Positions 9,419 to 62,334 of a stretch of 64,000 nucleotides of DNA are shown one piece after another. Made by a program: the position numbers and the translations under genes. Position 1 is the first letter of the stretch; the number at the start of each line of letters is the position of its first letter. Location of the stretch: assembly GCF_023055435.1 (NCBI RefSeq), contig NW_025963791.1:41478001-41542000 (forward strand), given 5' to 3'. The notes under the pieces are model-generated. The model was not told where the DNA came from. It was given only the letters and a program-made list of their open reading frames with translations, and made no database searches. The DNA is from Haliotis rufescens (lineage: Eukaryota).

Positions 9419-10714
9419 ATGCTTATTACAGACCTACCGGATGTTGTCCTTGTTAAGGTACTTTCATACCTTGAATGGGAAGATAAACTTATTCTAACAA
9501 GCGCCGTTCCTTCTATAGAGAATCACCTTAGAACGTCTGCTGCATGGCCCTGTTTTGAGTTTGCACCTAGTGCTGTCACAAAGTCTGATTACACCACGAC
9601 TGCAGAAAACTGTGTGAAGGAATATGGACAGTTCTTTAGAACATTTCGTTCTTTGACTTGCATGGAGACCAACTCAGTGACAAATGAACATGCAAGTATG
9701 TTTAAACTTGTCGGTGAAAACTGTCGTCATCTGCGTGGTTTTCACATGGAGCAAGGTAGTGATGGCTTTTGTCATGGACAACATTCAACTTCAAACCGCG
9801 ACATGGAAGAAGCACTGACCATATTGACGACATGTAAGGATTTGAAGAATGTAAGCCTGTTCCTCCCGTGCGAGACTGAGATTCAGCCCAAACCCTTCCT
9901 GTTGCTTCAGCTGATTAATCTGGGTGTGACAAGCTTTGTCACAGCCTTAGATTTGTCAAGTATCAGTTGGACGATGAGTGAAAGACAAATGTCAAGTTTG
10001 CTTAATTTTCCTAATCTGAGAGAACTGAGTTTACAGAAATGTAATGTTGACTCGACCCTTGTTCTGGGTTTAGCCAAGCAGAGTTTGGTACAGCTAAACA
10101 TTTTCCAAGAAAAAGAAATGTTTGATGTTGACATCTGCCAGCCTAATGATAATGACTGGGAAAGGATTCTAAAACTGAAACCAGACATGAAAGTGAATAT
10201 CACATTTGATGGAATCATACTTGTGAAAACTATGTTTCCGTCCAGAGTACCACTGAAACAGCTATCACTGAATGATATATCCAACAGTCTAACAAAGGGA
10301 ATGATGGACCATTTCACAAACAATTACTGGAATACACTGGAAGTATTTAAGTACACAAATCTCCTACATGAACAAACTCGAACTTCAGATACCAGACTTC
10401 CATTTGCTTTGGTAAGCTTTGCAAAGAAATGTTTAAAACTCCAAAGGATACATTTTGATGTTCCTCTGTCAAGCACAACAGTATTGTTATTAGCGCATGC
10501 AAGGAAGTTCCAAGAACTGCGAGTGATAAGAGATGATGTGTCTTATGAATTTGACTGGAAGAGAGCAGAGAGCACAATGACACCTGACTTTGTACAGTGG
10601 CTTAAAGAAAGTGGGCAAAATGAAGCCCAGTTGGAAAAGGCTGTGTCATCACTTCTGGGTTTTAAGTGGAAGTTATGGAATCTGCCTCTCAGTTTTTCCA
10701 ACAAATCATTCTAA
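9419..10714 (+). CDS. F-box/leucine-rich-repeat protein (FBXL-like), 431 aa, intronless CDS
   Basis: Long ORF. N-terminal F-box pattern LPDVVLVKVLSYL..DKL; LRR-like segments (CRHLRGFHM, FPNLRELSL, CLKLQRIHF); C-terminal VSSLLGFKW. First ATG is 9419 (the track start at 9356 is GTG). ATTAAA near 10769. Confidence 0.88.
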   Translation: MLITDLPDVVLVKVLSYLEWEDKLILTSAVPSIENHLRTSAAWPCFEFAPSAVTKSDYTTTAENCVKEYGQFFRTFRSLTCMETNSVTNEHASMFKLVGENCRHLRGFHMEQGSDGFCHGQHSTSNRDMEEALTILTTCKDLKNVSLFLPCETEIQPKPFLLLQLINLGVTSFVTALDLSSISWTMSERQMSSLLNFPNLRELSLQKCNVDSTLVLGLAKQSLVQLNIFQEKEMFDVDICQPNDNDWERILKLKPDMKVNITFDGIILVKTMFPSRVPLKQLSLNDISNSLTKGMMDHFTNNYWNTLEVFKYTNLLHEQTRTSDTRLPFALVSFAKKCLKLQRIHFDVPLSSTTVLLLAHARKFQELRVIRDDVSYEFDWKRAESTMTPDFVQWLKESGQNEAQLEKAVSSLLGFKWKLWNLPLSFSNKSF

Positions 10715-30790: not shown

Positions 30791-38227
<7,437 letters not shown>

Positions 38228-38604
38228 TCCTGCTAATAACTAACTGGTTCTAAATTTAATAATAATATTGTAGCCCCAGGTCTTCGGAATAGTTGTCACA
38301 TATATGAACAGCGCTTATCTCCCCTTGAATTCTTTTGTCGCTTACAAAAATAAAGCGAACTAAATGTATGTAATAAGCTGTTACTATGCAAAAATGGTAC
38401 ACAATGTGAACATAAGTCTATACGACTCGGTAGTTCTATTGTTCAAATGCAACCTATCTGCTGTTATGTATAAGAAATAAATTTGAATTGATGTAAGGAA
38501 CACCCGGAAGTTTACATTCTGAAGTTGACACGTGTTTTCGTGCAATCACGTTGTTGAAAGATTTATGGGTCTGGGACTTTGACGTTATGTTCAGTTTCTG
38601 AATA
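38228..38604. promoter_or_regulatory. Putative bidirectional promoter of ANKRD54 and ALG1
   Basis: Only 377 bp between divergent ATGs; ETS-type ccggaagt near 38504; E-box cacgtg near 38529. Confidence 0.75.
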
Positions 38605-41600
38605 ATGTTATATACGTTCCAACTTTTGTTTTGGTTTCCGTTTATATTGGTATTTCTATACCTACTACTAAATTATGTTGTTAAAGGGAAAAAAGCAGCT
38701 TGCGTTGTTGTACTTGGGGACATCGGACGTAGCCCACGGATTCAGTACCATGCAATATCACTCGCAAAGGAAGGATACATGGTGGACATCGTGGGCTATG
38801 GAGGTAGATCACAAACAGATCATTTGTTTTTGCTTATATTTGACTTCGATTCTATCATGTCTATCATTATGTGTTTGTCGATCCATATAACTATCGATTA
38901 ATTCAATTAAATCATAATGTATAGATTTTGCATTAAAACGAACATTTATAATGATTTTGAGTTTCATATTTTAAGTATGTTTGCAAGATTTACCTTGCAG
39001 TTTATGAACACAATAAAAATATATAAATCGTCTGTTACCAGTTTGAGCGTAAGGCAGATCACAGGACCATGTAATTAATAATAATAATAAACAAATTCGC
39101 AAAAAACTCGTAGACAAGCACTTTGGCCTTGTCTGCAAGTTTGTTTGTTATTAGTATTCGTTACATGGTCCTGTGGGTTGATGCATATTTCATAGCTAGG
39201 AATGCCAACATAACATGTAGGTGGCCTAGGGGCATAATCATGATAATTGGACCGCTTTGGCAGATTATGCAGTGGATTCTTTTGGGAAAAAACAATTCCC
39301 CTGGACACTTTGGGTAAAATTTCTGATGTACCCTTTCATTAGTAGACCCTTTGGGTATTATAAACTCTAGGACATGGACTGATTGTTATCTAAAATGTTC
39401 TGAAAGGTTTGTTTTTTTCAAATTTGGTCATGATATAGAAGCATGTCCCAGCCAAAGTTGATAAAAACTGAACATGTCCTAATAGTAGTACCAATCATCT
39501 CTTGCAAAATACTGCTTTCACTTCAGTATACTGCAGTATATATGTTACAGGAAACAAGTATAATCAGTGATTAAGTCTAATGACTGAAAATTTCAGTGAT
39601 TATGTCTAATAACTGATTCACTCGGTGGTTATGTCTAATTACTGAAATCTTCAGTAATTAGACATAATCACTGAAATGAACCAAGGGATTTTATACTTGT
39701 TTACTGAAAGCATATTCCTGCCTTGTTTTTATAATGTGTGCTAGTTTTGAAATTAGATTAGCTATCAAAGTAAATACAACCTCCTGTAACCAGATACCTT
39801 ACACAAAAATCACAGAAATAAGCTTAAACAGTTCAATCTTTTATTTCATAAAATGGTATGACGTGAATGGTATGACAAATAGCAGTCAGATGGACACTCA
39901 GGAATGTTTGTTTGCACATGAAAGACTTGAATGACATCTAGAATTACATTGCATCTTGGCCTTAAAACATTTGCAGCGATTGGTCTGACACCGTTTAGTT
40001 CCAACACAATTACACCTTACAAAGCCTTGACCACCACAGACTGAGTCAAGTTGAACCGCTTGACGCAAAGAGAGTGTTCAATCGGTATTGAAATCGTCAG
40101 CATTATACAGTTTGGTTTGGTTCAGTAATTAGACATAACCACCGAGTGAATCAGTTATTAAAATAATCACTGAAATGTCCAGTTATTAGACTTAATCAAT
40201 GATTATACTTGTTTCCTGTAACATATGTTTTGATTTCTATGGACAACTAGCGAAGCCTTCTCAAATGTTGTTACAACACATGATTCTGTTTGTTTACAGG
40301 AGATTGGCTTAGGACAAGATTATGAAGCCTTCTCACAAGTTATTATAAAAAGGCAGGGATATGCTTTCAGTAAACAAGTATAAAATCCCTTGGTTCATTT
40401 CAGTGATTATGTCTAATTACTGAAGATTTCAGTAATTAGACATAACCACCGAGTGAATCAGTTATTAGACATAATCACTGAAATTTCCAGTTATTAGACT
40501 TAATCACTGATTATACTTGTTTCCTGTAACATATATACTGCAGTATTACTACATTATGTATGTAGCTCAGTACTTGTAACTTCATTTTTTTAAACATGAA
40601 GGTTCGGATCCACATAAACAAGTAACAGATGAAAAGAACATATCAGTTCACACAATGATGGAACCTCCCGCTCTATTCAGAGGTAAGGCATGCCTTTGTC
40701 ATTCTCATCATCATGATATGCATATGTGCTGCAGTGATACTATTGATCTTGTCATTGTTTCCATGATGAGTTTGAAAGTAATGAGTGAGTTAAAATTATA
40801 TATAGCAAAGGCAATGTAAGAGAGCAATCTAGCAAGTAGTTCCTGCTTTTCTTCATATGAAGACAGTCAGTAAGCCAATTATGCATTAAAAGAAATAGAT
40901 AGAAGGATATTTGTGACAATTCGTTCCACAAGACTTACCAATGATAGAGTGCCATGAATATGTCGAAGCTGACATATTGCACTAATTTGCAAAGTTTACA
41001 AAACATAATACAGAGTATTCGAAGAACTGTATAAATCCTGCTTTTTCACTGTGGATGTGACCCATGAAGATATGGATTAGAATAACGCAATTTGTCTACT
41101 GCATCCCATGCTTGTCGTAAGAGGCGACTAACGGGATTGGTTGTCAGACTCACTGACTTGGTCGATTCATGTATCGTATCCCAATTGCATAAATCGATAC
41201 TCATGATGTCTATCACTGTATTGTCTGGTCCAGACTTGATTATTTACAATATTGCAGACAGCTGTCACATAGCTGGAATATTGCAGAGTGCAGCGTTTAA
41301 CAATAAGCAAACAAACTGTGGATGCTCACTGGATGAACCATTATGACATGGAATTTGTTTCTTTCAGTGTTTCCAAGAATCATAGGCTATTTTCTGAAAG
41401 TCATCTGGCAGTCAGGTGTTCTAGGATTTACTCTTCTCTTGTTGCCCAAGTCTGGATATACACTGCTTCAGGTAAACAGCTTACCCATCGTTGTTTGCTT
41501 GGACAACACACGTACTATATGTTAATCTATTATCTGGTTCCACATGTCTTGAACTCAGTTAACTGTAACGTCAGTGAACACATTCAGTGAAAGTACATTT

Positions 41601-44600
41601 GTTATGGTAAGGGTGTAAACAACTACATTTTTTAATCAAATTGATTACATTACTCTTGTCATGCAGGGTCATGGAACTGTAGTTTATATTGGTTGGAATA
41701 TTTAAGGAATAACTTAAATATTTGTTTTGCATTTTGTGTTATAAATAATATTAATGAAAATTCTTATATATATTAGTCAACACCTATATCCACACAGACT
41801 GCTTATTACATCAAAAACATAAGATAACTGTAGATAACAACATGGAATCCGTGACAATGTTCAGCCCAATAAAGCAATACAAACCATGGCTGATATATTA
41901 TCAGCCAATCAGGAGACTGTAGTCTGTTAGTGGGCATGGCCTATTTTATGTTAGTTTTATTGAAACATAAATGCACAGGAAAATACTTGGTTTGCCAATC
42001 ACATGCCATGAAATCACTTGCGAGTTACTTATTGTACTATGAATCATAATACTTCAAACTTAGTCTTTTCAATTTGCCATTTAAAGTGACAGTTTGATGG
42101 TTACTTTGCAATCAGAAGTCAGGTTAGTGAAAGTAGATTCCTTCTGAGTAGCAAGACCCGTTGAAACTAACTTGCCAACATCGGATAAGTTTTCTAAAAC
42201 ATGGAGCTTTCTCACTTCTCATATTTTAGATGGAACAGTGCCGTCAGTCTTGAGATGGACAGGTTACTATCTATGGCACACAACTTTTCATGGTACTGAT
42301 TACTGATAACGACAATACGACTGAATATCTACCCGAGGCAAGGGAGTTAACAGACTGTAATGCTCCAGTTTCCACCCTTGCCGAACTAGGTTTCTTGGTT
42401 TGATTGTAGCGCAACCAGTGGCTATTATGAGTTATGTCCCTTCTATGTACCCCTTATTGACCAGTCAGAGTCCACCTCTCATATCACTTGCATTTGCTTC
42501 AAACAAAATGGTGTCACCACATGAAGGATTCTGATCGATAATCAAGATCTATATTGTAGTAACATGGGTCTTACTTCGCGTATTGCATCAAATCATGAAA
42601 AGATGTGGAAAATATCTGTAGACGCTATTTTGACGGATACATGCTTTGCAAATCCTGCAGCCGACCGAAATGTGCACGGTAGTTTACGAACCGGATGTCG
42701 ATTTGGATTGAAGAATGCATAGAGTCGTTAGTCAGGTCAAAATGTAACTCCATAATTCCAGCCTATTTCTGCAAGGGTGGAAACTGAACTTTTATAGTCG
42801 GTTAACTCCCTTGCCTAGGGAAGATGACAGCTGAATAACCCATAGCCCTCCAGCAGCATCTGTGGAATGCTGTCTGTGATGTCTCTGAAGGTTTGGTGTA
42901 ACAACTTATGGACAGACACTGTTCATGGAGATAACAGTCATTCTTCTGTTATGGTATGGCAGCCTACAGTCGGTTCTTGAGATGAGGTGTGTGTTTAACT
43001 GTTCTTCCTAGAACCCCCCGGCCATCCCAACTATTGCCGTCTGCTGGCTGGTGTCGCTGCTGAGATCCAGCCACCTGGTGGTGGACTGGCATAACTATGG
43101 GTACACCATCCTCAGCCTTAGTCTGGGCAGGTCCCATCCACTGGTGGCCTTCTCCAAGTGGTGAGCAGGTTTGGTTGTTTTCGACTTACATTCATGTCAA
43201 ATGTGGCAGTCTTTTGTTCAAGTTGGAAACATTTCAAATTTGCATGATTTAGGCTACAACTTGTTGTTAGGTATTAAGTGACCACAATCTTTTTTTATTA
43301 ATGTAGTTAGCACACAAGGTTAAAACTTCCATTAAGCACATTTTTACACCCAAACACAACATGGCTGCTTGAATGACAGATTTCCCCAAAGTCATTTCCT
43401 TTAACGTGTTAGAGCAATAGGTTGTCTTTTGTTATTTCTTAGTAGTCTTTATGTATAATAATGGGAAAGATCAGTTATATCTATATTTCTCTTACAATTA
43501 TATCCAGTGTTTGACATAGAAAATAATTGCCAGGCTGCCATCAGGACTTTAGAAGCTGTAGGCCCGGACTGAACTCTCCAGGCCCTCATTTAGAAAACTG
43601 CAGCTTACTGTGACAGAGAAATACGCACACAAATTTACTGCAGGACATAAGGACCCAGGCTTGTTGTCAAGCAAGACAAGGTGACAACGGTATAAGGATC
43701 TATACCGAAACGTCACTTTTCACAGTATTAAAGAAGTTGTTATCCATAATATTGTGTCTATCTTGTCATCCGTCAACTTCTAAGTAATGCCTATCAAACA
43801 ATTTAACAGACACGAGATGTACATGTACCTGCCACAGGCTTACGGACAGGTGCTTATTTCAAACACTGGTTATCTCTATAGGTTTTACTGGCAATCGAAT
43901 TGGGATTACACTTTAGAATAAAACAATCCTTTCTTTGTCTCAGGTATGAAAGATTCTTTGGAAGATTTGCACACTCCAATCTGTGTGTGACGGACGCCAT
44001 GAGGAAGGACCTCCACGATAACTGGGGTGTGAAGTGAGTGGGGGGAATCTCCGAGTGTGGGATGCTGGTTGTGAGGGCCACTGCCATAAATTTACAAATC
44101 TGCATAAAAAAAGTGTAATCAATTTATGATGTAAGGATCTTTAGAAATTGAGTACTGGAATTATTAATTTGTGAATGGATGTCTGTTTTTGCATAATAAT
44201 TGGTAAATTACAGTATCTATAAAATATGTATTATAATCCATTGGTAAACTAAACCTTTGTGCGTATTCATTTCCTTCGAAATTCACTCTAGCCTCACTCT
44301 AACTGACAGGAAATGTAAACAAGCTAAACATTTAAGTTACTCAAGGAGGACTAGCTTCAAACTCTGAGGATGAGTGAAATAAGGTTTATACTAGTTTACA
44401 CTAGTCCTCTGGACTGGTATTAAAAAGGGCCATTAACACCAGGCTTGATAACCCGTTGATGAAGGTCTGTGTAATTCTCACAGAGCAGTGACGCTGTATG
44501 ATCGAGCACCACAGAGATTCCAAGCAACCTCTGTCTCCACTAAGCATGACCTCTTCTCCAGACTGTGTCGAGAATACCCTGTATTTGCTGCGGAGTAAGT

Positions 44601-47600: not shown

Positions 47601-50600
47601 AACTGCTGTGCAGATTTCGGTCGATTGCTGGATTTGCAAAGCATGTGTATGGGTAGCTCGGCATCAACAGATATTTTCCAAATCTTTTCATGTTTTAATC
47701 AAGGAGCTCACATGATTTGATGCACTTCGCAAAGTAAAACCTGTTTAATCACAATATTGATGTTGATTATCGATCCGATCATCTTGACTGGGCGCCACCA
47801 TTTTGTTTGAAGCAAATGCAAGTGATATGAGAGGTGGAATCTGATTGGTCAATAGGAGCGACATAGAAGGGATATAACCAGTAATAGAAACTGGTGGCGC
47901 CCAGAAATTCCAGCCTAGTTTGCCAGGAACTGGACTTTTGCAGTAAACAGCCTTGCATCGGGAAGATGTGGGCACAAAGGGTCCACCTGTGATGGTAGTA
48001 GCTTACGTTTCTAAATGGAATTTCTCCAAAGTCAGGCTATGTATTATTTTTCTTCAAATTTCCATTTTTTTGACATCCTGGTAATCTTCTTGATGTAGCA
48101 GTTGAAGCAGAGTAGAGCATGTCGAGTTGTATATAACATGGAGATGTCAGAAGCATAGAACACTATGCTAAACACTTCTCAAGTTCAGAAATTTACACAC
48201 ATGATGTATGTTATCTGTCCAATCTCATTAAAATCAGATTGTTGTGCTCGCTACTGCTTAACAAATATCTGAAGACATCCCATGACGGGTCACATCAGAC
48301 CAAACTTTATCCGACCAATGGGATGACTGACAACAAGTCTACATTAGCCCATCAGAAAGCTGCTTTCTCATGCTCTACAGCACTAGATTCAAATTGGCGA
48401 CTACGCTTCCGAATTCTCGATTAGAAAATAACATTCTGGAGTGGGTAATACATGGCCTATTATGGATTTAGTCGTAAAGCCTGTGTTGTTCGGAATAAAT
48501 TTGTGTTACATTTTTCATGGTTTCATCATTAGAAAACATTCTGACTGTCACTTCCTGATTTGGTAAGCGATGCACTGATTGACCGGATGAAAGGTTGTCC
48601 TAACGTGCCCTGTAATGGAATGTCCATCTTTGTATAGCAGTAGCGAGAACAAAGATCTAATTTTTATGAGATTCGTTATCTGTCCCCTAAGGCAAAGGTC
48701 CTCAGAAAGACTTTTATATGAAGAAGATATCGGAGATGACTTTCTCTCACATCAAGTTCTGTCTCCCATGGCTGACATCGGAGGACTATCCACTCCTGCT
48801 CGGTGAGTAGAACCTGTGACGTGTCCTTGGTAAAATCAATGATCATACTGAGCAAGCATACAATGCAGCTGTAACAGAAAACAGGCTTGGAGCATGATGA
48901 CGTTTATTCACAAAACCACATATTGACACACCTATGTTTTGTACAATATTTACAATGAGCACTATATGTCCTTTGGCTTGATGCAGTCAGATACTCCTAA
49001 TTTGATCGCTGGAACGCACAACACTCCATACTAAGTCCACGAGCAATCTTGGTAACCTCATGGTCATGTGACTCGTCCAAATCAGCTGCTGAAAGGTCGT
49101 CGTGGTTCTCAAAGTTTTGTTTGATGAAGTTGTAGCACTGCCTGACTTGTCTCCACTTCTGTGTGGCCAGTCGTAGGTAGACCTGACGGACACCTTCAGC
49201 TACACACTTCCTGTTAAGCAGGAGTAACCCATGGCCAACATGGCTGCCATTGGCTGCATCTCTCACGATCTTCTCGGTCAGTTCCAGGATGTAGGCATCT
49301 GAAAGGAGTATAAGAACTGTTTATATTTCTGTGTAAAGAAAAAGAATATTACGCCTTACAGTATAAATGTTTTGGAAGGATTTGCTCAATTTTTGAATGA
49401 AATACTTGAGGACAACACATGTACATACCTATGGCCTGGACTTGTTCGAGGAATCTATCCTGCATTTCAATGAGACTGAAGAGCTGGAAGGAGGCAGACA
49501 CTGGGTCGTCCTGCCATGAGACAGCAGCAGACGACAATTTAGTGGCAGACGTTGAACAGATCTGGTCAGCACAGGTGGTTGAAGTGGATGTCGCCATGGT
49601 TTCAAAGTTAGAATATAGGATGGATTTTCAAGGAGAGCCAATTGACAATGCAAATCCAAAGCTTGAATGTGAATAGTGTGCATCAGACATCCTGCCTCTT
49701 ATACCTGCCTGTGTGACACTGAGGCATGGAGTAGCCTGTTGGAGTAGTGGCAAGCTCAGTTCTCCCATAAGTTGGATTGACAAGGATTATCCTGGCTAAC
49801 CCTGCTAATTTGACCTAATCTCATTGTCTTGTCTCATTGAGAGTGCTGGGCAGGAACTGCTTGATTGGCTGGAAGTCGGGTAGATTGAAGAGATTTATTA
49901 CGTGTTGTTACAGCTATGTACTCTCCACACCATGTTGTTAGTGATTGCTTGATTGGATGTCAGCCTACCCAATGGCTGCAATGCATTGCTATAGGAAGGA
50001 CTTTTTGGTGATTGCCTGATTGGCAGTAAATTGGTGGTGCGTATGTCACAGTATTGTGAATATATATTGTTGATATTGTGCTGCCACATTACTGCTGGTA
50101 ATTTAAACAGGCAGGCCAAATTTGACTGCAAAGAAACAGATGTAAACTTGGATACACTTTTTTACCAACCATGATGTAAAATATTGTGAAGTTAGCAAAC
50201 ATTCATTATAAAATTTGAAGTCATGATAACGTATTGTTCCGGAATGTTTAGATAACAGACATATGTATCATGATGTATTAATTTTCTTCTTTGAAAATAC
50301 AATGACACAACATTACCACTATCACTAAGATTTGTACAAACTCTCATTGCTAGTCAGTTGTTTGTTTTGTCTGATTGTTGACACACAGAGAGTAGTTTTA
50401 ATTACAGTAATTTACACAGGTGACAGAGCTTAATTAGCTAGTGTTTAATGGGTGAAATGTTTCACTAATCAGCAGTAGTTTAGTTGAAGTGAAGTGTGAT
50501 GACAACTTCTTCCTATTCACTCAGGCTGTATATAACCATGGTCAGTGCAGGGACTTCTTCAGAATGTTTACTGGCAGGCTTTTGTGTTTGCTGTGCAGTG

Positions 50601-53600
50601 TTGTGTATCAGGGTGCAGTGACCACACCTAATGATTCATTAACATTAATCAGCGCCTTCAACCAACAACTGGTCTGCTATATCAACCATCGCTGTGAATA
50701 GCTGTAATATTGCTGAGGCCCCAAAGCAGAATGTATCCCATCCTTCTATATCAACCAGGCCATGAAGCTATATTGAACCTAAAAGGAAACAGCACTTCCT
50801 GAAAATCCTTCATGAAAGTTTCCCTTTGAAATACCAATGCATTTTTTTTTGTATCTCATTTTTGGCATAGTCTGTATCCAAATTTTATGTCAACGTCCGA
50901 AAAGTAACACACATATGGATATAATGACAAAATGCAGCTTAACAAACAACCATGGTACAAATTCCCGAATGCTTTCCATGAGAATCAAAATTCACTTGCA
51001 TTTCCTTGTGCCTTTTCTGATGAATGGCACCACATACAGTAAACTGGGGTTATAACGAACTGAAAGGGACCACTACCGGGTAATTCTAGTTCGTTATAAC
51101 CATAATTCATTATAAGCTTACATACAACATATAGACAGAAAATGTCCGGGAATAAAAAAAACAGTTTGTTATATCCGTCAGTTCATTATAAGCGTGTTCC
51201 TTATAGACAAAGTTGACTGTACGTGTATCCAACATTCTTGTATTGATACTAGCAACATGCCAAGACTTACAAAGTATCAGAGAAACCAGGCTGTAAGAAG
51301 ACGGTACGCTGTTGGTGACCTGGTGTCTTTGCTGCAATCTGTAGATGGTTCTCAGGTGGACAATAAAAACGTTTGCAATCATTTTTGCAGGCATGCAGTC
51401 GTCCGAAAGCCTGGTTTTCCCCGATCCTTCTATAACATTCCAAATAGGAAATTCCAGGCGAGCTTTGAAAAAAAGCCATGGCTGAATTTTGCTGTTGACT
51501 CTTGTCTTTTTCAGTCAAGAAGAAATCTTTGCAATAGTCTTGATTAACAACAGTATGAGGATCTAAACCGAAATGTCGCCATTACAGTAAAATAGGGAAG
51601 TTGTTATACGTTATTATGTCTACAATAGTCTTTATGTTTCCCTTTCTCCCACAGGCTCAGCGGACATAGGCGTGTGTCTTCATAAGTCATCCAGTGGGCT
51701 GGATCTACCAATGAAAGTGGTTGACATGTTTGGCTGTGGCCTTCCAGTTTGTGCTGTGGATTTTAATTGGTCAGTGAATACAAATAATTGATTGGGGACT
51801 CTGGGTTAGAATAGGTCCCCAGCAACCTATACTTGTCTCCCCAGGGGTTCTCTGGGTTAGAATAGGTCCCCAGCAACCTATGCTTGTCTCCCCACGGGTA
51901 CTCTGGGTTAGAATAGGTCCCCAGCAACCTATGCTTGTCTCCCCACGGGTACTCTGGGTTAGAATAGGTCCCCAGCAACCTATGCTTGTCTCCCCACGGG
52001 TACTCTGGGTTAGAATAGGTCCCCAGCAACCTATGCTTGTCTCCCCACGGGTACTCTGGGTTAGAATAGGTCCCCAGCAACCTATACTTGTCTCCCCAGG
52101 GGTACTCTAGGTTAGAATAGGTCCCCAGCAACCTATGCTTGTCTCCCCAGGGGTACTCTGGGTTAGAATAGGTCCCCAGCAACCTATGCTTGTCTCCCCA
52201 GGGGTACTCTGGGTTAGAATAGGTCCCCAGCAACCTATGCTTGTCTCCCCAGGGGTACTCTGGGTTAGAATAGGTCCCCAGCAACCTATGCTTGTCACCC
52301 CACGGGTACTCTCGGTTAGAATTGGTCCCCAGCAACCTATGCTGGTTGTACAAGGTGACTTAATGGGTAAATGTACAGTGACTTTGTTTATAGCATGTCA
52401 TCCTACTCCGATAGTAGGGGTGACTATTGAGGCATTTTTGACTATTGCGATACTATTGCGATAGTTAAAACAACCTATTGCGATACTATTGCGATAGTGG
52501 CCCTACTATTGCGATACTATTGCGATAGTTTTCACTTGCAATTATAGCAGGCTTTAGCAGCATATATTTCAGCATTTTGACTGACACCATCAAAATAATT
52601 ATAACTTTCTGATACTATTTGCAAAGAAAACAAGAAATGAGAAGAAAACAAGTTCAAACAGACCTCAAAAATATTTTAATATAAAATTTCACTTCATGTA
52701 ACTGGCAGAGTTTTAGCGCCAATGTGAATGAATGTGATTGAATGACTAGTATTTGACTATACAAACTGTCAAACTCTTTAATTGTCACATTGGCATTCAC
52801 TGAATGACTAAATGCGATTCAACATATCAATTAGGAAACAAAGTTGACAAAACTGACATGTGGCATCCGCCATCTTGTCAATGTTGCCTAGCGACGAGTA
52901 GCTAAGGGACGTAATTCTAAATCAAGCAGACAAAGAAGTGCAATCCAATCGAAAGCATGACAGAGGTTAGATGATCATAGGAGTTGTTTCTATGTTTTTT
53001 AAGAAAGTAAATGTACCAAACAAATTAACTATCGAAACTATCAATAGTTAGACAAACTATCGGCAATAGTATCGATTGTTTCAAGTTGCAATCGATAGTG
53101 TACTATCGTGAGACAAGCAATCGCAATCAATCGATAGTTCCATGTATCGTTACACCACTATCTGATAGCGTGGATTGTTGCCAATCATTGGTTCACCAGA
53201 ATCACCAGATTCAACTTCATGTAGGTGGAACATTGCTGAGTGCTGAATTAAATAACAAACCCAGTGGTAAACATCAAGGGCCACACTAGGCTGACATACC
53301 ACGATAGGACTGAGGTAGTGTGTAGTTGGGTTTCCTCTCACACTAAGCTGACATACCACGATAGCACTAAGGTAGTGTGTAGTTGGGTTTCCTCTCACAC
53401 TAAGCTGACATACCACGATAGCACTAAGGTAGTGTGTAGTTGGGTTTCCTCTCACACTAAGCTGACATACCACGATAGGACTAAGGTAGTGTGTAGTTGG
53501 GTTTTACTCTCACACTAAGCTGACATACCACGATAGGACTGAGATAGTGTGTAGTTGGGTTTTCCTCTCACACTAAGCTGACATACCACGATAGGACTGA

Positions 53601-55730
53601 GATAGTGTGTAGTAGGGTTTTCCTCTCACACTAAGCTGACATACCAGGATAGGACTAAGGTAGTGTGTAGTTGGGTTTTCCTCTCACACTAAGCTGACAT
53701 ACCACGATAGGACTGAGATAGTGTGTAGTTGGGTTTTCCTCTCACACTAAGCTGACATACCACGATAGGACTGAGATAGTGTGTAGTGGGGTTTTCCTCT
53801 CACACTAAGCTGACATACCAGGATAGGACTAAGGTAGTGTGTAGTTGGGTTTTCCTCTCACACTAGGCTGACATACCACGATAGGACTGAGATAGTGTGT
53901 AGTTGGGTTTTCCTCTCACACTAAGCTGACATACCAGGATAGGACTAAGGTAGTGTGTAGTTTGGTTTTCCTCTCACACTAGGCTGACATACCACGATAG
54001 CACTAAGGTAGTGTGTAGTTGGGTTTCCTCTCACACTAAGCTGACATACCACGATAGGACTGAGATAGTGTGTAGTGGGGTTTTCCTCTCACACTAGGCT
54101 GACATACCACGATAGGACTGAGATAGTGTGTAGTTGGGTTTTCCTCTCACACTAAGCTGACATACCACGACAGGACTGAGATAGTGTGTAGTTGGGTTTC
54201 CTCTCACACTAAGCTGACATACCACGATAGCACTAAGGTAGTGTGTAGTTGGGTTTTCCTCTCACACTAAGCTGACATACCACGACAGGACTGAGATAGT
54301 GTGTAGTTGGGTTTCCTCTCACACTAAGCTGACATACCACGATAGCACTAAGGTAGTGTGTAGTTGGGTTTTCCTCTCACACTAAGCTGACATACCACGA
54401 CAGGACTGAGATAGTGTGTAGTTGGGTTTCCTCTCACACTAAGCTGACATACCACGATAGGACTGAGATAGTGTGTAGTTGGGTTTTCCTCTCACACTAG
54501 GCTGACGTGCCACGATAGGACTGAGGTGTGTAGTTGGGTTTTCCTCTCACACTAAGCTGACATACCACAATAGGACTGAGATAGTGTGTGAACAGGCATC
54601 CTACTCCAACTTGCATCTCATCAAATATATCTCGGTAGCCCTAATTAAACTCCCAACATGATACTACTAGCATACACAGAGAGTATCTGTTGGAGTGTTT
54701 CACCGTCTTGTGTTCCCAGTCTGCCCGAGTTGGTGAAGCACAGAGAGAATGGGCTGGTGTTCCACGACAGCGAGCAGTTGTCCGATCAACTGCAGGTAGG
54801 TAACATTATAACATGTACCTAGTACAGCACTTCTATTTCAAACCTAAACGGCTTCCAGTTTCAGAAGCGGACTCTCCCTGATTAGCACTGCTAGTTATCG
54901 TAACATGTCATGGCTCATGGAAGATATAAAGTTGGCAGTACTTTTGGACAGAAATCTCTCACAGGAAATACAACTTAATGTATTATAAATTGTAAATTGA
55001 GTCCCATGGGAAGGGTTTAACATTGGTTCTCCTCTGTCACGTTCTGTCTCAAGCATCCCACTGCTTCCACCTGTTTGTCTGTTGATCAGAATAACCCCCC
55101 AGAAACTGGTGTGCACTTTAGAACGCCCGAAGTGATGCAGGTCTAAGACGTTTACCACTTCAGTGAAACCCACGAGCACGGGTATGGTGCTGACAAACCT
55201 AGAAACATAATTGGGGCGAACCGGGATTCGAACTCATGATCATAGGTTTCTGGCGCGCCCAAGGGACGCAACTCTACACAGCGAATCGCAGCGCCTTAGA
55301 CAACTGGGCCACCCGTGCCCCCGTAGACAGTAATAAGCAGTGTCTTAAGCGTAAAAAGTACAGCTAACAGCTTCAGTAGCAGAGCCATTAGTGATGTCAT
55401 TTGATTGTGATGTCATGGTAACCAATGACGTCACAATGGTCTGCAAAGCAATGTAGATATTGCTTGATCTCACCCAAGCAATGTCTCCTTTCTACTACAA
55501 AGTTCATCAAGCATGTATTCAAGGGAAGTTTACAGGTATTAAATCTGTTTGGATGGCTCAAAATAAATGAACACTTCTCTTCACAGGATCTCTTGAAGGG
55601 TTTTCCAGACAACCAATCAGCATTGAGGAAACTGAGAAACAATGTGAAGTCCTTTCAGTCGGTGCGATGGCACGACCAGTGGGTCCGACTGGCCCTCCCA
55701 CTGTTTCAGGACAAAGTGAAGACAGACTGA
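38605..55730 (+). CDS. ALG1: Chitobiosyldiphosphodolichol beta-mannosyltransferase, 459 aa, 13 exons
   Basis: Exons 38605-38803, 40602-40682, 41368-41471, 43012-43160, 43944-44033, 44484-44594, 45594-45691, 46102-46140, 47275-47337, 48692-48802, 51655-51769, 54720-54795, 55587-55730; GT-AG and in phase (1380 nt). Motifs [61 protein letters not shown]. Confidence 0.98.
39529..40545. repeat. ~195-bp near-perfect inverted repeat (foldback-like element) in ALG1 intron 1
   Basis: 39529-39723 is the reverse complement of 40351-40545; extra partial arm at 40121-40226. Confidence 0.93.
41058..41314 (+). mobile_element. SINE-like family B
   Basis: 10-bp TSD actgtggatg at 41048-41057 and 41315-41324. 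Confidence 0.88.
42326..42826. mobile_element. Long-TIR MITE, copy 2
   Basis: Colinear with 14836-15384; TIRs gaggcaagggagttaac / gttaactcccttgcct. Confidence 0.88.
43660..43805 (+). mobile_element. Penelope-like terminal-repeat relic with hammerhead-like core
   Basis: gtgacaa-c-ggtata(aggatc)tatacc-gaaacgtc; relatives at 4788-4915 and 51540-51620. Confidence 0.55.
45299..45448. mobile_element. ~150-bp palindromic MITE-like hairpin
   Basis: attcatcac..ttttttaatatgggaaatatcaacc..gttaatcggtatttgcc / ggcaaataccgattaac..ggttgatatttcccatattaaaaaa..gtgatgaat. Confidence 0.88.
45786..45970 (+). mobile_element. SINE family A, partial
   Basis: cctatgattgtggg..ggtttcaccaaagtggtaaac..gctttcctccca..actcactcactc. 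Confidence 0.8.
46432..46800 (+). mobile_element. Helentron/pearl-like non-autonomous element (degraded)
   Basis: (gtcc)n near the 5' end; two ~170-bp subrepeats, each ending agagtt(g/a)tggcccttgct. Confidence 0.5.
47451..47968. mobile_element. Long-TIR MITE, copy 3 (opposite orientation)
   Basis: catcttctcgagg...cgggaagatg; flanks tgggcacta / tgggcacaa match 8/9. Confidence 0.88.
48997..49597 (-). CDS. Uncharacterised two-exon helical protein, paralogue 1 (156 aa), nested antisense in ALG1 intron 10
   Basis: Exons 49597-49429 and 49298-48997 (G|gtatgt ... tttcag|AT, phase 1); accATGG start; TATAAGA near 49700; AATAAA at 48908-48903; conserved with paralogues 2 and 3. Confidence 0.87.
51257..51400. 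pseudogene. Tc1-like transposase N-terminal fragment with internal inversion
   Basis: [13 protein letters not shown] on +, then [27 protein letters not shown] (paired-like HTH) on -. Confidence 0.6.
51794..52370. repeat. 51-bp minisatellite, ~11 units
   Basis: Unit ctctgggttagaataggtccccagcaacctatgcttgtctcccca(c/g)gggta. Confidence 0.98.
52415..53160. mobile_element. hAT-like MITE
   Basis: Ends taggggtg / caccacta; 8-bp flanks tccgatag / tctgatag; subterminal actattgcgat and actatcga repeats. Confidence 0.7.
53283..54590. repeat. 57-58-bp minisatellite, ~22 units
   Basis: Unit cactaagctgacataccacgataggactgagatagtgtgtagttgggttttcctctca. Confidence 0.98.
55125..55322 (-). mobile_element. SINE family A, lacking its 3' tail
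   Basis: Near-identical to the 5' 200 bp of 62729-62997. Confidence 0.9.
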
Positions 55731-56399
55731 CGTTCATCATTTACCTCTGTTTTAATGTATTATTAAACAAGTTGTTATCAAAGCATGTTCCTTATTTTTC
55801 TCCTCATCCCGTATATAGATCAACTTCCTCAGATTATGGATGATCTCTTGTGTGAGTGAGTTAATATTTGTCAATTCATTGGTATAGTCAAAATCAGTTA
55901 GTGTTGCAAGACCTAACCCCGCTCTATCCAGAGTTACTTACGGGCATCAAAGTACAATGGTAAGTCATCACTGTGCCAGGAAGTGGACCCAACCCCTGGC
56001 AAGGAAGGACACAATATTTGTCCAGAACTGACTGACACATTATATTTGGGATAATGCTTTCTTAGTAAAGTACAGAGTGAGGCACCTAGTCACCAGCACA
56101 AACTCAGCGATCTAATCCACTCAGCCTCCGAGACTTCCCCTCTGACAAGTGTAAACTGGCATTGGCAATGGCATTTGTGTGTTCATAGCTTTTGGCCATG
56201 GGGTACATGCCAATTTACACTTGTCAGAGGGGTACCTCATTCTGGCAGTGTGGGTTCGAATCCCGGATGGGACTAAACCCAAAAATGTATGAGAATCTGT
56301 ACTTTACTAAGAAAGTCTTATCCCAAATATAACATTTGTTACATTTGTTACATTTTTCTAAATGGCATTTGTGTGTTCATGACTGACTGACATTTTGGC

Positions 56400-56560
56400 A
56401 AGACCTCCCCGTGGGCCCCAGTTGGGCTCCCCTTCTTGCTGATCTGTTTCTTTATGCATGTAAATCAGGTTTTCTCCTCAAACTGGCAAAGTCGAAACAA
56501 GGTAACTTGGCCAAGAATTTTAACATGAGCGTCAGGTGTATCGAGGATGTCATATCGTTC
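56400..56560 (+). pseudogene. Penelope-like reverse transcriptase fragment
   Basis: GPSWAPLLADLFLYACKSGFL...NFNMSVRCIEDV resembles MGxxxAPLLADLFL...RYIDD. Confidence 0.7.
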
Positions 56561-57260
56561 ATGTACCATCAAAAAGCCAATTCCCCTCCACTTCCCTTCT
56601 ACTCACCGGAACTCACCTGTATATTATTTTCATTTCACAGACAGATGTTTCAATGATCCTTTCAGATAAGTTTCACCACTATTTTTACCTTTTTTGCCCA
56701 ATCTGTTCGGCGGATAATGGACACTGATTATTCTCTGGGCTTTACGTTTAATACTTTCATTTGAATAGAGTCCGGGTAACATAACAGGAAAATTTATCAA
56801 ATAACCTTTAGACTGAATTTGTAATCATTTGATATACATATCATCTTGGTTTTGGATGACTAGCCTCTAGGACTGCCAATTGGCTCAAGTATGGCGTCCT
56901 GTTCTATTTACACTAAAGGTCCTGACTGGCTTTTACTTCATCGTCTGAAGGATCTGAGGAGAACTTAAGTGTGGTGCTGTAAGTCAACAACAAGACTCTC
57001 AATGTTCAGCAGTTTATTTACAAAGCTCCAGATGAGTTTCTTGACAGCATGTGTCATGGCATCACTTGGCATTAACAATATCAACAAAAACACTAGATTT
57101 CAAACAATGAAGACAGAATCTTCAACATAAGTTTAAGAGTGTTTTCATCCTGCTAGCATGATCGTCACGTCACATGTTAACAATATTTACATGAGCACTG
57201 GATGTTCATCAGTGAAGACATATCTTCAATTCAAGTCATTTTAAGAGTGTTGTCATCCTG

Positions 57261-57942
57261 CTAGCATGATCGCTGGAACGCACAACACTCCATACTAAGT
57301 CCACGAGCAATCTGGGTGACCTCGTGGTCATGTGACTCCTCCAAATCAGCAGCTGAAAGATCGTCGTCATCGAAGTTTTGTCTGATGAAGTTGTAGCACT
57401 GCCTGACTTGTCTCCACTTCTGTGTGGCCAGTCGTAGGTAGACCTGACGGACACCTTCAGCTACACACTTCCTGTTGAGCAGAAGTAACCCATGGCCAAC
57501 ATGGCTGCCATTGGCTGCATCTCTCACGATTTTCTCGGTCAGTTCCAGGATGTAGGCATCTGAAATGAGAGACAGGAGCTTATTAGTAAATTGTAAATTA
57601 GTAAATTGTGTATGTAAATAATAGTTCATAAATGAAGACAGTGATATATATGCATAGGCCAATCAGCTAGTTATTTAGGTTATCATGTTAAAAATAGCAT
57701 TTCTTTACGGATGTGACCTAATGGCCAACTTAATCAAAGAATTTCATTTAAGAAAGAATTACTTTAGATGAACACATGTACATACCTATTGCCTGGACTT
57801 GTACGAGGAATCTATCCTGCATTTCAATGAGACTGAAGAGTTGGAAGGAGGCAGACACTGGGTCGTCCTTCCATGAGGCAGCAGCAGACGACAATTTAGT
57901 GGCAGACGGTGAACAGATCTGGTCGGCACAGGAGGATGCCAT
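57261..57942 (-). CDS. Uncharacterised two-exon helical protein, paralogue 2 (151 aa)
   Basis: Exons 57942-57786 and 57559-57261; GT-AG, phase 1; TATATAG near 58050; CArG CCATAAATGG at 58113-58122; AATAAA at 57018-57013. Confidence 0.87.
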
Positions 57943-59784
57943 GGTTTTAAGTTTCAATTACGATTTAACCAGAAAACAGATGAATTTAGGACTCGTAGCT
58001 TGCTTTAGTGGAGGTTATGAATGGTATGCATCAGACATTCTGCCTCTATATATCTGCCTGTGTACACTGAGGCATGGAGTAGTCTGTCGGAGAAGTGGCA
58101 AGCTCAGTTCTCCCATAAATGGGAATGACAAGGATTATTCTGGCTAATCCTACCACTTTGACCAAATCTCACAATTCTTGTCTCACTGAGAGTGCTGGGC
58201 AGGAAACTGTTTGATTGACAGGGAGACTAAAGCGATTTATAACATGTTGTTACAGTTATACAGCTATCCACTGTCAACACTAAAGTCTTAATAGTAACTG
58301 ATTGTTTGATTGGATAACACCACCTCAGTAATAGTAACGCATTATCATAGGAAAGGAATTGTTGCCGATTTATAAGCAATAGATTGTTAGGATATTGTTG
58401 ATATTATCACACCAATGATGATATAATTGATCAAAGGAATTAATGTATGCTGTGAATTAATGGAAAAAGATTACGTATGTAAAGATGATGATTATATCAG
58501 TTTCGTTGAAAGTAAAGTGCAACTACGATGATTTAAGGCACCTGCACATAACTTCCTGCGTGTCAACAAAGAAGTTGTCAATCATGCTTTTGTGTTCGAT
58601 TAACAAATCACATCTTGTACTCTATTACTGTTTAGTGTTACGCCATTTTCACCTGATGTCAGGTAATTAACGGGGTGTTAATCAACATCGCCACCCGTGT
58701 AACCACAATACACTTTGTGTGCCCACATTGCGACCATTAAAACAGCTTACCAGCTGATGGATGTTTGGAGAAGGTCCTCAAGCCCCAATACAACAGCCAA
58801 TTGTGCATTCTTAATATATAACCACGAGACAGGGACAATGAAAAGTCTTGCTCAATGATGTATATGTCAACAACGTGAGCTGACCAACTAACCATGCAGA
58901 CCTGTCTATAATAACATCTTCATATCCGACCTGTGAAAATCCCGGGTTAGAAGAGGTCTTCACAAACCCATGCTTGCCGCAAAGGCGACTCTACTTATCG
59001 TAAGAGGCGACTAACTGGATTGAATGGTCAGGCTTGTTGTCTAGGCTTCCATCAGAACTATTGTGTAAATTGGCCTTGGAAATATATGGATAAAATCAAA
59101 ATGAATTTGGAAATGAAGGATGTATGTGAGTAAATACTATCAAAATTATATAATAATTTGGTTTATAGAGTAATTAGGGTGATATGTATTGGTATAATTT
59201 TTATTTTCGTATTGAAATGATTTCTATTTTCATATTGCTTTGATTTTTATTTTCGTATTGAAAAGATTTGTTGTTATAACAAGTGTGCGTGAAAATTGGT
59301 TGTTGTATTGGGGCTTCAGGACGTTGTCTAAACATCCATCAGCTGGTAAGCTGTTTTAATTGTCGCAATGAGGGCACACAAAGTGTATTGTGATTACACA
59401 GGTGGCGATGTTGATTAACACTCCGTTAATTACCTGACATCAGGTGAAAATGGCGAAACGCTAAACAGAAATAGAGTACAAGATGTGATTTGTTGATCGA
59501 ACACAAAAGCATGAATGACAACTTCTTTGTTAACACGCAGGAAGTTATGTGCAGGTGCCTTAAATCATCGTAGTTGCACTTTACTTTCAACGAAACTGAT
59601 ATAATCATCATCTTTACATACGTAATCTATTTCCATTAATTCACAGCATACATTAAATCCTTTGATCAATTATATCATCATTGGTGTGATAATATCAACA
59701 ATATCCTAACAATCCATTTCTAATAAATCGGCAACAATTCCTTTCCTATGAAAATGCGTTACTATTATTGAGGTGGTGTTATCC

Positions 59785-60058
59785 AATCAAACAATCAGTG
59801 ACTACAAAGTGTCGACAGTGGATAGCTGTATAACTGTAACAACATGTTATAAATAACTTTAGTCTCCCTGTCAATCAAACAATCAGTGACTACAAAGTGT
59901 CGACAGTGAATAGCTGTATAACTGTAACAACATGTTATAAATCACTTTAGTCTCCCTGTCAATTAAACAATCAGTGACTACAAAGTGTCCATAGTGAATA
60001 GCTGTATAACTGTAACAACATGTTATAAATCACTTTAGTCTCCCTGTCAATCAAACAG
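59785..60058 (+). repeat. 88-bp unit triplicated upstream of paralogue 3
   Basis: aatcaaacaatcagtgactacaaagtgtcgacagtg(g/a)atagctgtataactgtaacaacatgttataaat(a/c)actttagtctccctgtc x3; single copy in the left arm. Confidence 0.93.
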
Positions 60059-60243
60059 TTTCCTGCCCAGCACTCTCAGTGAGACAAGAATTGTGAGATT
60101 TGGTCAAAGTGGTAGGATTAGCCAGGATAATCCTTGTCATTCCCATTAATGGGAGAACTGAGCTTGCCACTACTTCGACAGGCTACTCCATGCCTCAGTG
60201 CACACAGGCACATATATAGAGGCAGAATGTCTGATGCATACCA

Positions 60244-60443
60244 AATTTATTTATTCTTCAATTTATTCCAAATTTTAAAATTTCAAAAATCGATATAAGC
60301 AACCCCTAAAAGCCCCCCTCTTGTGTTGCACACACCACTTTCACCCTTCTCGGAATACACTAAATGGTCTGGCCAGGCCCGTGTGCGAAATACGCTGCAG
60401 TCGGAAAGCGCACGTTAAATCTTCTATATCAGTCAGTCAGTCA
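60244..60443 (+). mobile_element. 200-bp retroposon-like insertion upstream of the paralogue 3 ATG
   Basis: 11-bp TSD gatgcatacca at 60233-60243 and 60444-60454; (TCAG)n 3' tail; absent from the mirrored arm. Confidence 0.85.
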
Positions 60444-60533
60444 GATGCATACCATTCATAATCTCCACTAAAGCAAGCTACGAGTCCTAAATTCATCTGT
60501 TTTCTGGTTAAATCATAATTGAAACTTCCAAAC

Positions 60534-61240
60534 ATGGCATCCTCCTGTGCCGACCAGATCTGTTCACCGTCTGCCACTAAATTGTCGTCTGCTGCTGCCT
60601 CATGGAAGGACGACCCAATGTCTGCCTCCTTCCAACTCTTCAGTCTCATTGAAATGCAGGATAGATTCCTCGAACAAGTCCAGGCCATAGGTATGTACAT
60701 GTGTTCATTTAAAGGAATTGTTTCTTAAATGAAATTCTTTGGTTAAAATGGTCATTTCGTCATATCCGTACCACATAAATTAACATAGCTATACTATTTA
60801 TAAAGAACTGCTATTGTCATCATGATAACCTATACAACTAGCTGACTGATCAATGCATATATATCACTGTCTTCATTTATGATATAACTATTATTTACAC
60901 ACACAAAAGTACTAATAAGCTCCTGTCTCTCATTTCAGATGCCCACATCCTGGAACTGACCGAGAAAATCATGAGAGATGCAGTCAATGGCGGCCATGTT
61001 GGCCATGGGTTACTTCTGCTCAACAGGAAGTGTGTAGCTGAAGGTGTCCGTCAGGTGTACCTACGACTGGCCACACAGAAGTGGAGACAAGTCAGGCAGT
61101 GCTACAACTTCATCAGACAAAATTTTGAGGACCAGGACCACCTTTCAGCTGCTGATTTGGAGGAGTCACATAACCACGAGGTCACCCAGATTGCTCGTGG
61201 ACTTAGTATGGAGTGTTTTGCGTTCCAGCGATCATGCTAG
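60534..61240 (+). CDS. Uncharacterised two-exon helical protein, paralogue 3 (152 aa)
   Basis: Exons 60534-60690 and 60939-61240; GT-AG, phase 1; aacATGG start; TATATAG at 60213-60219; CArG CCATTAATGG at 60143-60152; AATAAA at 61366-61371. Confidence 0.87.
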
Positions 61241-62334
61241 CAGGATGACAACACTCTTAAAATGACTTGAATTGAAGATATGTCTTCACTGATGAACATC
61301 CAGTGCTCATTGTAAATATTGTTAACACGTGACGACATGACATGCTGTCGATGCGTGGTTTTGTAAATAAACTTTGAGAGTCAGTTGAGTTCTTTCTGTA
61401 CCCAGAGCCATGTCCTATAGAAAACAGTGACATTAATGACTGCTCTCTTTACGTATAAGCCTGGGTAGAGAAAGCTTCCCGTCCCGGATACCATCTTCAA
61501 ATGGCAGATTTTTAAAACGTTTTTTTTCAATTGATAGAAAACATATGACAATCCAACAATGCATTTCTATTCCCAACTTACTAAACACCAACTGATCTCC
61601 AGCGGAATACAAACTGCTGGCGACATTCTACCAACTCATTGCAACAATTATATGGGCAATTCTATGTTTTGCTGTATAAGCGGCATACACTTTTCGGAGG
61701 AGCAAGTATGGCAGCTTACAGATGAATAAGGTATCAAAGTTTTTGAAATACCTGAGGAAAATTAATAAAATATTGAATTTTCAGACTCCGCATTGCACAG
61801 TGCAAATATATATTGGCATCATATCTAATTATGAATTGTCAGTGCAAGAGACTAACCAATAACTATATTTTCAGCCGAAACAGATACTATTTGGCGTAAA
61901 GGGCAAATAGTTCTGGTAAGGGAATCGACCACTGAAAATCAGTGATGACTTCAGGTGATTGCGAAAAAGGTAAGCATGTCCTGCCCTACCAGTAGCACCC
62001 GCCATTCAAACAATTTGCATAAAAAAATGTGTTTAGTGCCTGACGCAGCACAGCAGTACTCCTGCCATGCGACGTCAGCCTGTAAACCAATCAGACAATC
62101 AAGTGATCGGCGAACCAGAAAATCCAGTGACACGAGAGTACCATTACTTTGTTAATTTTGAATTACGTCTGCTGTGTACAAGTGCAGATCTTTTGCTGTT
62201 AATATAGGTGAAGAAAAATGTTAAGAAATATATTCGTTTTGTAATTTTTTTTCAAACGATTTACGTAAGAGGGGTGAAAACATATCCCTCCTCCCTGTGC
62301 TATGCCATAAGCCCTACTCATCGAGTATACAGGG

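Follow-up and report, generated by a model that had tools for sequence, protein, structure and literature searches.

A two-exon gene family encoding small, predicted helical hairpin proteins in molluscs, with three copies in and beside an ALG1-type gene of Haliotis rufescens

The 64-kb stretch of the Haliotis rufescens genome analysed here (contig NW_025963791.1, positions 41,478,001 to 41,542,000; hereafter the window) harbors three copies of a two-exon gene, located in and beside a plus-strand gene which we take to be ALG1. The structure of each copy was confirmed base by base on the coding strand (Table 1), and the three copies were also picked up independently by the repeat finder. They represent real spliced genes with open frames of 156, 151 and 152 amino acids (aa) in copies 1, 2 and 3, respectively, which are under purifying selection and are conserved between gastropods and bivalves, and whose products have a confidently predicted hairpin fold but could not be linked to any named protein family.

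All three copies contain a GT-AG intron with the donor GTATGT and the acceptor TTTCAG, which splits a GAT (Asp) codon in phase 1, such that exon 1 ends one base into the codon. The start codons are embedded in an aaaccATGG-type context, and the length differences between the copies are multiples of three nucleotides (nt) in both exon 1 (169 versus 157 nt) and exon 2 (302 versus 299 nt). The exons of copy 1 share 94-95% identity with those of copy 2 (exon 2 alone: 94.6%), while its intron, which is shorter than those of copies 2 and 3, aligns with the latter at its ends only. An initial annotation, made from the sequence alone, had proposed three two-exon genes with a shared phase-1 intron, good Kozak contexts, TATA boxes and AATAAA signals, whole-codon coding indels and a strongly diverged copy 1 intron, and all of these features are borne out by reading of the bases.

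The three copies also share a conserved block of ~108 nt, located upstream of the TATA box; the blocks of copies 2 and 3 are 89 and 90% identical, respectively, to that of copy 1. The TATA-like box is found ~105-115 nt from the ATG in copies 1 and 2, and ~315 nt from it in copy 3 as a result of a 201-nt insertion resembling a short interspersed nuclear element (SINE). This insertion, which is missing from copies 1 and 2, is bracketed by an 11-nt direct repeat, gatgcatacca (60233-60243 and 60445-60455), representing a target duplication, and is located where transcription of copy 3 should start by analogy with copy 2. Its core (60378-60444) is found again at positions 7952-7995 of the window (95% identity) and has a word depth of ~1000 in all four of the RNA-type sequencing runs described below, as expected of a SINE-like repeat. 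The description of the three paralogues as intact in the initial annotation thus stands for their reading frames, but not for the region upstream of the copy 3 frame; signs of relaxed constraint are also seen in this copy.

Copies 2 and 3 are situated in the opposite arms of a large palindrome, with the genes pointing outward. The arms are 89-94% identical over the aligned blocks, and an 88-nt tandem unit occurs three times in the right arm (59784-60057) and once in the left arm (58208-58281). These differences of 6-11% between the arms, together with the 88-nt units and the 201-nt insertion, indicate that the palindrome is a real sequence and not a doubled assembly.

The translated product of copy 2 (exon 1, D and exon 2) is letter for letter the 151-aa RefSeq protein XP_046366742.2 (P0051; LOC124142365), and the gene models are therefore already present in RefSeq as "uncharacterized protein". 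As such, the earlier designation of the gene as unrecognised holds in that it belongs to no named family, but not as regards the databases, where it already has "uncharacterized protein LOC..." entries; these RefSeq Haliotis and bivalve models represent the same genes or homologues, with no difference in kind. An orthologue of copy 1 is found in H. cracherodii (P0052), which is likewise 156 aa in length, ends in RSN and shares ~97% amino acid identity over the same length. When exon 2 of copy 2 was used as query, eight "uncharacterized" proteins of 152-153 aa were retrieved from H. rufescens, H. cracherodii, H. asinina and H. rubra (82-93% identity; E-values: 1e-46 to 1e-52).

An exhaustive HMMER search with an abalone profile against 1.84 billion representatives identified eight clusters at E <= 0.001, and a word-based profile search with a broader alignment identified 29 proteins. 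Named relatives derive only from Haliotis, the scallops Pecten maximus, Mizuhopecten yessoensis and Argopecten irradians, and the oysters Saccostrea, Ostrea edulis and Crassostrea/Magallana, and the family thus reaches beyond the abalones. All of the named relatives are called "uncharacterized" and none of the matches has a Pfam domain. Members include LOC124280894 of H. rubra, LOC117328993 of P. maximus, LOC110465479 of M. yessoensis, LOC105345240 and LOC109620850 of Crassostrea gigas and LOC125650505 of O. edulis. Amino acid identity to the family is 79-93% within Haliotis and 17-32% for the bivalves (E-values down to 1e-44 against the family profile). Full-text literature searches with twelve locus and UniProt identifiers returned no paper.

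Across the relatives, which fall in the same size class, a pattern of D-x-Y, L-x7-G, K-W, E and a C-terminal R is conserved, corresponding to D54, Y56, L81, G89, K101, W102, E134 and R151 (P0001 numbering). Copies 1 and 2 retain all of these residues, while copy 3 has a His at Y56 and a Phe at a semi-conserved C-terminal Cys (C147). The bivalve relatives probably likewise occur in local tandem clusters, as judged for the oysters from their consecutive LOC numbers, and the phase-1 intron at the Asp codon is probably also present in oysters, where open reading frame (ORF) predictions turn into unrelated sequence just before this residue.

To identify additional copies, the abalone profile was run against all six frames of the complete assembly, and the stretches fetched were then analysed with blastn and translated. 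Eleven copies of this type are present in the H. rufescens genome, three in the window and eight elsewhere, and ten of the eleven are open. The eight are clustered within ~30 kb at C113 16893500-16924000 (loci L026, L030, L027 and L031), seven on one strand and the last inverted. Seven of these are open, one of which encodes H. rufescens LOC124133854 exactly, and the eighth, C4 (L030:7809-8512), is a pseudogene in which the 5′ half of exon 1 is replaced, an in-frame stop is found and the stop codon is lost. A Tc1/mariner-type transposase-like ORF of 317 codons (L028:1570-2523, minus strand) adjoins this cluster, and long satellite arrays occur on its other flank (L029). Three divergent paralogues were also found (L012, L023 and L025; Table 1). 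In L025 the Gln/His-rich insert takes the place of the short acidic linker, and the intron after its short first exon interrupts the same Asp codon in phase 1; a homologue search with the conserved part of this long paralogue yielded no matches. The phase-1 intron in the Asp codon, which precedes a Y-I-x-x-L motif, is thus found in all eleven copies and in L025, indicating that it is older than the split between the subfamily of the copies and L025. The family appears to be tandemly amplified in each lineage, with this old intron kept.

Selection was assessed with Nei-Gojobori counts, summed over both exons unjoined and with the split codon excluded. Pooled over all pairs of the ten open copies, the proportions of synonymous (pS) and nonsynonymous (pN) differences are 0.135 and 0.047, respectively, a ratio of 0.35, in agreement with the selection on the protein suggested in the initial annotation. 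The ratio of nonsynonymous to synonymous divergence (dN/dS) is 0.34 between copies 1 and 2 (W1-W2; Fisher p = 0.008), 0.26 between copy 1 and C8 (W1-C8; p = 0.0003) and 0.29 between copy 2 and C3 (W2-C3; p = 0.001). Between copy 2 and the C113 copies, divergence in the intron and upstream region (0.14-0.23) is similar to dS (0.10-0.16), and dS therefore serves as a fair neutral yardstick in these comparisons. Nonsynonymous variants concentrate in the N-terminal tail and the acidic linker, and helix 2 is invariant across four Haliotis species, with synonymous variants inside it. A stretch of 28 residues has one nonsynonymous and several synonymous variants, indicating that the constraint acts on the protein and not on the DNA.

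Private changes, nonsynonymous to synonymous, number 6:7 in copy 1, 1:1 in copy 2 and 6:1 in copy 3, with those of copy 3 including Y56H and C147F at two of the family-conserved residues. The numbers are small, but this ratio and the insertion at the predicted start site together suggest relaxed constraint or a changed role for copy 3. Furthermore, copies 2 and 3 (W2-W3) have a dS of only 0.05 and a dN/dS of 0.56, which with only 15 changes is not significant (Fisher p = 0.34). These features, and the truncated state of C4, are what would be expected if the window copies were young duplicates drifting to pseudogenes, their frames still open through recent duplication and gene conversion. We consider this unlikely, and plausible for copy 3 only, since copy 1, which has an H. 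cracherodii orthologue, must be of some age and its private changes are almost evenly divided, all but one of the eleven copies are open, helix 2 is invariant despite the synonymous variants, and the family is conserved between gastropods and bivalves. Copies 1 and 2 look fully functional.

For analyses of the full-length protein, database proteins were used, while the window sequence was searched exon by exon. The family proteins are 130-200 aa in size, with an isoelectric point of 5.3-5.9 for the whole protein in abalone, and have a polar N-terminus (MASSCADQICSPSATK...). Neither a signal peptide nor a transmembrane segment is found on direct reading of the sequence, as had been stated previously. 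AlphaFold2, supplied with a 35-sequence alignment, predicts helices at residues 29-69, 74-118 and 131-152, the first two forming an antiparallel hairpin that is separated from the third by a disordered acidic linker (mean predicted local distance difference test score, pLDDT: 77; > 90 for residues 30-118). A model built with eight abalone sequences only was poor (pLDDT 56). The parts beyond the hairpin are predicted with less confidence (pLDDT about 70-78); the C-terminal helix is amphipathic in the model and contains E134, which is conserved in the family, as well as an Arg that is invariant and three residues away from the end of the protein. Helix 1 has a net charge of -4, helix 2 one of +6 and the linker one of -6. 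The acidic helix, basic helix and C-terminal helix outlined in the initial annotation are hence recovered in the model. Zinc binding by the Cys and His residues present in the abalone proteins was considered and rejected, as these residues are not conserved in the bivalves.

The failure to assign a named family was likewise reproduced in every search undertaken. Pfam returned only scattered sub-threshold matches (DUF3730, GOLGA2L5, Stb3), none of them consistent, for the single exons, the divergent paralogues and 35 family members. Two profiles compared with the PDB sequences yielded no match below E = 0.4, and queries of the ESM Atlas with one abalone and one oyster member produced no usable match. 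No PDB structure was matched by Foldseek at E <= 0.001, so that the fold is best described as a generic long α-hairpin to which no family can be assigned. Comparison against 48,161 chains with VIA-align produced a flat list of generic hairpins with Z <= 12, values below ~13 being common for helical models.

The top Foldseek rows, all insignificant, are the ING4 dimerisation domain (E-value: 0.12; template modelling score: 0.73-0.80 by target) and Vipp1/PspA, raising the prospect that the proteins form a distant, unrecognised branch of a hairpin family of the ESCRT-III/Snf7-like, PspA/Vipp1-like or ING-type dimerisation domain kind, in which case they would polymerise on membranes or act as a dimerising chromatin factor. 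ESCRT-III/Snf7 proteins consist of a basic α1-α2 hairpin, α3-α5 and an acidic autoinhibitory C-terminus over about 200-240 aa, and the hairpin, acidic stretch and short C-terminal helix predicted here recall this autoinhibited layout. We nevertheless hold such a relationship to be improbable. The fold matches score no better than dozens of hairpins from unrelated proteins (prefoldin, Rad50, dynein stalk, chemoreceptors), and no Pfam match to Snf7, PspA or ING was obtained for any of the 35 members; for Snf7 (PF03357) this extends to every exon, even at E-values up to 1. With 130-200 aa and three main helices the proteins could not accommodate the five or six helices that ESCRT-III has, and helix 1 is acidic rather than basic. 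The similarity to the N-terminal dimerisation domains of ING4, ING5 and ING3 does not exceed 15-17% identity at E = 0.12 or worse, and in contrast to the ING family no PHD finger or other Cys/His-rich finger follows the hairpin and no nuclear localisation region is found. The abalone sperm lysin and the 18-kDa sperm protein resemble the present family in their genus, similar size, all-helical structure and multi-copy or duplicated state. Abalone lysin is secreted with a signal peptide, strongly basic and under positive selection, whereas the family described here lacks a signal peptide, is acidic and is under purifying selection, and this identity was rejected; no Pfam family, the egg-lysin profile included, was reported for any member.

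Transcription was examined in four sequencing runs, available as Logan contigs, which are only guessed to be RNA. In these runs exons and a repeat are covered and most of the intergenic DNA and the copy 2 intron are empty, which fits RNA libraries. Most of the pieces are 95-99% alike to the window, and the runs therefore probably derive from a sister Haliotis species or from other paralogues. One contig, X6 record 17, joins position 60688 (plus 2 ambiguous bases) to 57561 (minus 2), connecting exon 1 with exon 2 exactly where the junction was predicted. The splice junctions proposed in the initial annotation are thereby supported as to their position, but not for an individual copy; the halves of this contig map best to different paralogues. 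Exon 2 of copy 2 is furthermore overlain by X3 records 8 and 9 as well as X6 record 17, while X3 record 10 is placed on exon 1 of copy 2 (57871-57938) and X6 records 20 and 21 on exon 1 of copy 3.

The plus-strand exons at 38602-38898, 43012-43161, 48691-48807 and 51591-51788, and those ending at 54795 and 55730, presumably belong to ALG1, to judge from their motifs; searched one by one, these exons found no match in Pfam or among the PDB sequences, and a genome-wide PF00534 scan did not list the locus. In X6 record 22 (1019 nt, depth 27), the donor at 54795 is spliced to the acceptor at 60939, and the sequence upstream of 60936 matches 54766-54795 with one change; in X3 record 9, an exon 2 acceptor is preceded by a plus-strand exon whose last base is 56978. 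These contigs indicate that plus-strand transcripts from ALG1 splice into the copy 3-type exon 2 acceptor. By our reading, the junction of the ALG1-type donor and exon 2 places phase 0 onto a phase-1 exon and leads to a stop after six codons, and since it is out of frame, the read-through transcript yields no helical protein. Such a splice would truncate ALG1, whose normal last exon closes at 55730.

With the canonical exon 1-exon 2 contig having a depth of only 2.8 in run X6, it might be argued that exon 2 of copy 3 is an alternative 3′ terminal exon of ALG1 and that no independent gene exists. We judge this to be quite improbable. Contig depth is a poor measure of expression, copy 3 still has an exon 1, an ATG and an upstream promoter block of its own, exon 2 in this family is generally spliced to exon 1, as in RefSeq P0051, and the junction with ALG1 is out of frame for the helical protein. 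The argument moreover concerns copy 3 only and is compatible with the window copies being genuine genes.

Table 1. Positions of the gene copies, their associated elements, exons of the plus strand and divergent paralogues (positions are those of the window unless preceded by C113, C223 or C179)
Feature	Position	Strand	Description
Copy 1 promoter	TATAAG 49703-49698; upstream block 49716-49823	-	
Copy 1 exon 1	49597-49429	-	ATG at 49597, 56 codons + 1 nt, donor GTATGT
Copy 1 intron	49299-49428	-	130 nt
Copy 1 exon 2	49298-48997	-	begins with 2 nt of the split Asp codon, followed by 99 codons and the stop TAG; acceptor TTTCAG 49304-49299
Copy 1 AATAAA	48908-48903	-	
Copy 2 promoter	TATATA 58052-58047; upstream block 58064-58171	-	
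Copy 2 exon 1	57942-57786	-	ATG at 57942
Copy 2 intron	57560-57785	-	226 nt
Copy 2 exon 2	57559-57261	-	
Copy 2 AATAAA	57018-57013	-	
Copy 3 promoter	TATATA 60213-60218; upstream block 60094-60200	+	
Copy 3 SINE-like insertion	60244-60444	+	201 nt, between TATA box and ATG
Copy 3 exon 1	60534-60690	+	ATG at 60534
Copy 3 intron	60691-60938	+	248 nt
Copy 3 exon 2	60939-61240	+	doubles as terminal exon of plus-strand read-through transcripts
Copy 3 AATAAA	61366-61371	+	RNA-type contig X7 record 30 ends at 61378, just beyond
Palindrome	57155-61346		arms 57155-58802 and 59294-61346, 491-nt spacer 58803-59293; repeat finder
ALG1-type exon	54700-54795	+	ends CAG, then gtaggt; donor used in X6 record 22
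Unannotated exon, 3′ end	56949-56978	+	followed by GTAAGT; X3 record 9
Paralogue L012	C113:15454857-15458249		no intron at the family position, 200-aa ORF, 70-residue N-terminal extension
Paralogue L023	C223:36588321-36591602		seen as exon 2-like ORF only
Paralogue L025	C179:1909588-1912800		267-aa exon 2; a repetitive Gln/His-rich insert of ~170 residues separates helix 2 from the C-terminal motif

Several further features can be observed in the window. Two minisatellites, at 51692-52456 and 53260-54589 (units of 51 nt and 57-58 nt), are located within the introns of the ALG1-type gene and give rise to long spurious ORFs on both strands. An ankyrin-repeat exon (36203-36451, minus strand; Pfam Ank, E-value: 3e-13) is found on the opposite strand just upstream of the ALG1-type exon at 38602-38898. 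A single open frame of 463 codons (9323-10711, plus strand) has a start (LPDVVLVKVLSYLEWEDKL...) that resembles an F-box, with only a sub-threshold Pfam match to MerR_2, and positions 31282-31585 consist of a run of N (gap or masked).

The proposal that the units are transposable-element cargo or a viral remnant, with the open frame being the element's own gene, draws on their multi-copy state, the satellites and transposase-like ORF near the second cluster and the SINE-like pieces nearby, and is very improbable, given that only ~14 copies are present in 1.33 Gb, as two local clusters and singles, that neither terminal repeats nor target duplications were found at the edges of the units, that a spliceosomal intron is conserved across the divergent paralogues, that no transposase, integrase, reverse transcriptase or capsid-type Pfam match was obtained, and that the bivalve relatives form similarly small local clusters, to judge from LOC numbering.

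Taken together, these data make it very probable that the three copies belong to a family of functional genes, as yet unnamed, that is seen only in molluscs. Copy 3 appears either to be under relaxed constraint or to have been co-opted in part as an alternative terminal exon by ALG1 read-through transcripts. As to the explanation as a whole, namely that these are genuine genes of a mollusc-only family whose products act through protein-protein contacts, we consider it the reading that on balance probably holds. The product would be a soluble cytoplasmic or nuclear protein without an enzymatic fold, whose hairpin may pair with the helices of a partner or self-associate into a helical bundle. 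D54, Y56, L81, G89, K101-W102, E134 and R151 would then form a packing or binding surface. The more specific scheme, of a soluble intracellular protein that works via helix-helix contacts and whose basic helix 2 is the docking site of the acidic linker and the C-terminal helix, is put forward tentatively on the strength of the model and may well not apply.

A number of observations weigh against this explanation. A dN/dS of 0.35 reflects mild constraint, the pair of copies 2 and 3 is by itself compatible with neutrality, and the apparent divergence could be lowered by gene conversion between copies. The mollusc-only range rests on an exhaustive search with an abalone-only profile and on word-limited searches, and the sequencing runs, guessed to be RNA, are not assignable to these three particular copies. 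Furthermore, the C-terminal helix is modelled at moderate confidence only (pLDDT 58-78), and the predicted fold on which the mechanism is based is one of the most widespread in nature. More far-reaching proposals can be envisaged, such as a mollusc-specific invention with its own cellular role, in which a self-inhibited hairpin might polymerise or bridge partners in a process specific to the germline or larva, the many near-identical copies serving dosage, or, separately, a regulatory role of the palindrome beside ALG1, with read-through into copy 3 leaving ALG1 without its last ~45 residues and coupling the two genes functionally and not by physical nesting alone. We consider such readings improbable, about as much so as an ESCRT-III or ING affinity.

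The value of these findings lies mainly in cataloguing, since no new mechanism is indicated and the fold is very common. The family has been amplified independently in commercially important species, including abalones, oysters and scallops, yet has had no name, domain entry or publication. It is now defined by its signature residues, conserved intron and fold, which renders it easy to spot in expression atlases and proteomes. The splicing of ALG1 into copy 3 neatly illustrates how a duplicate nested in or adjacent to a host gene can capture transcripts of the latter. Lineage-restricted small proteins such as these constitute a large unexplored part of mollusc genomes.

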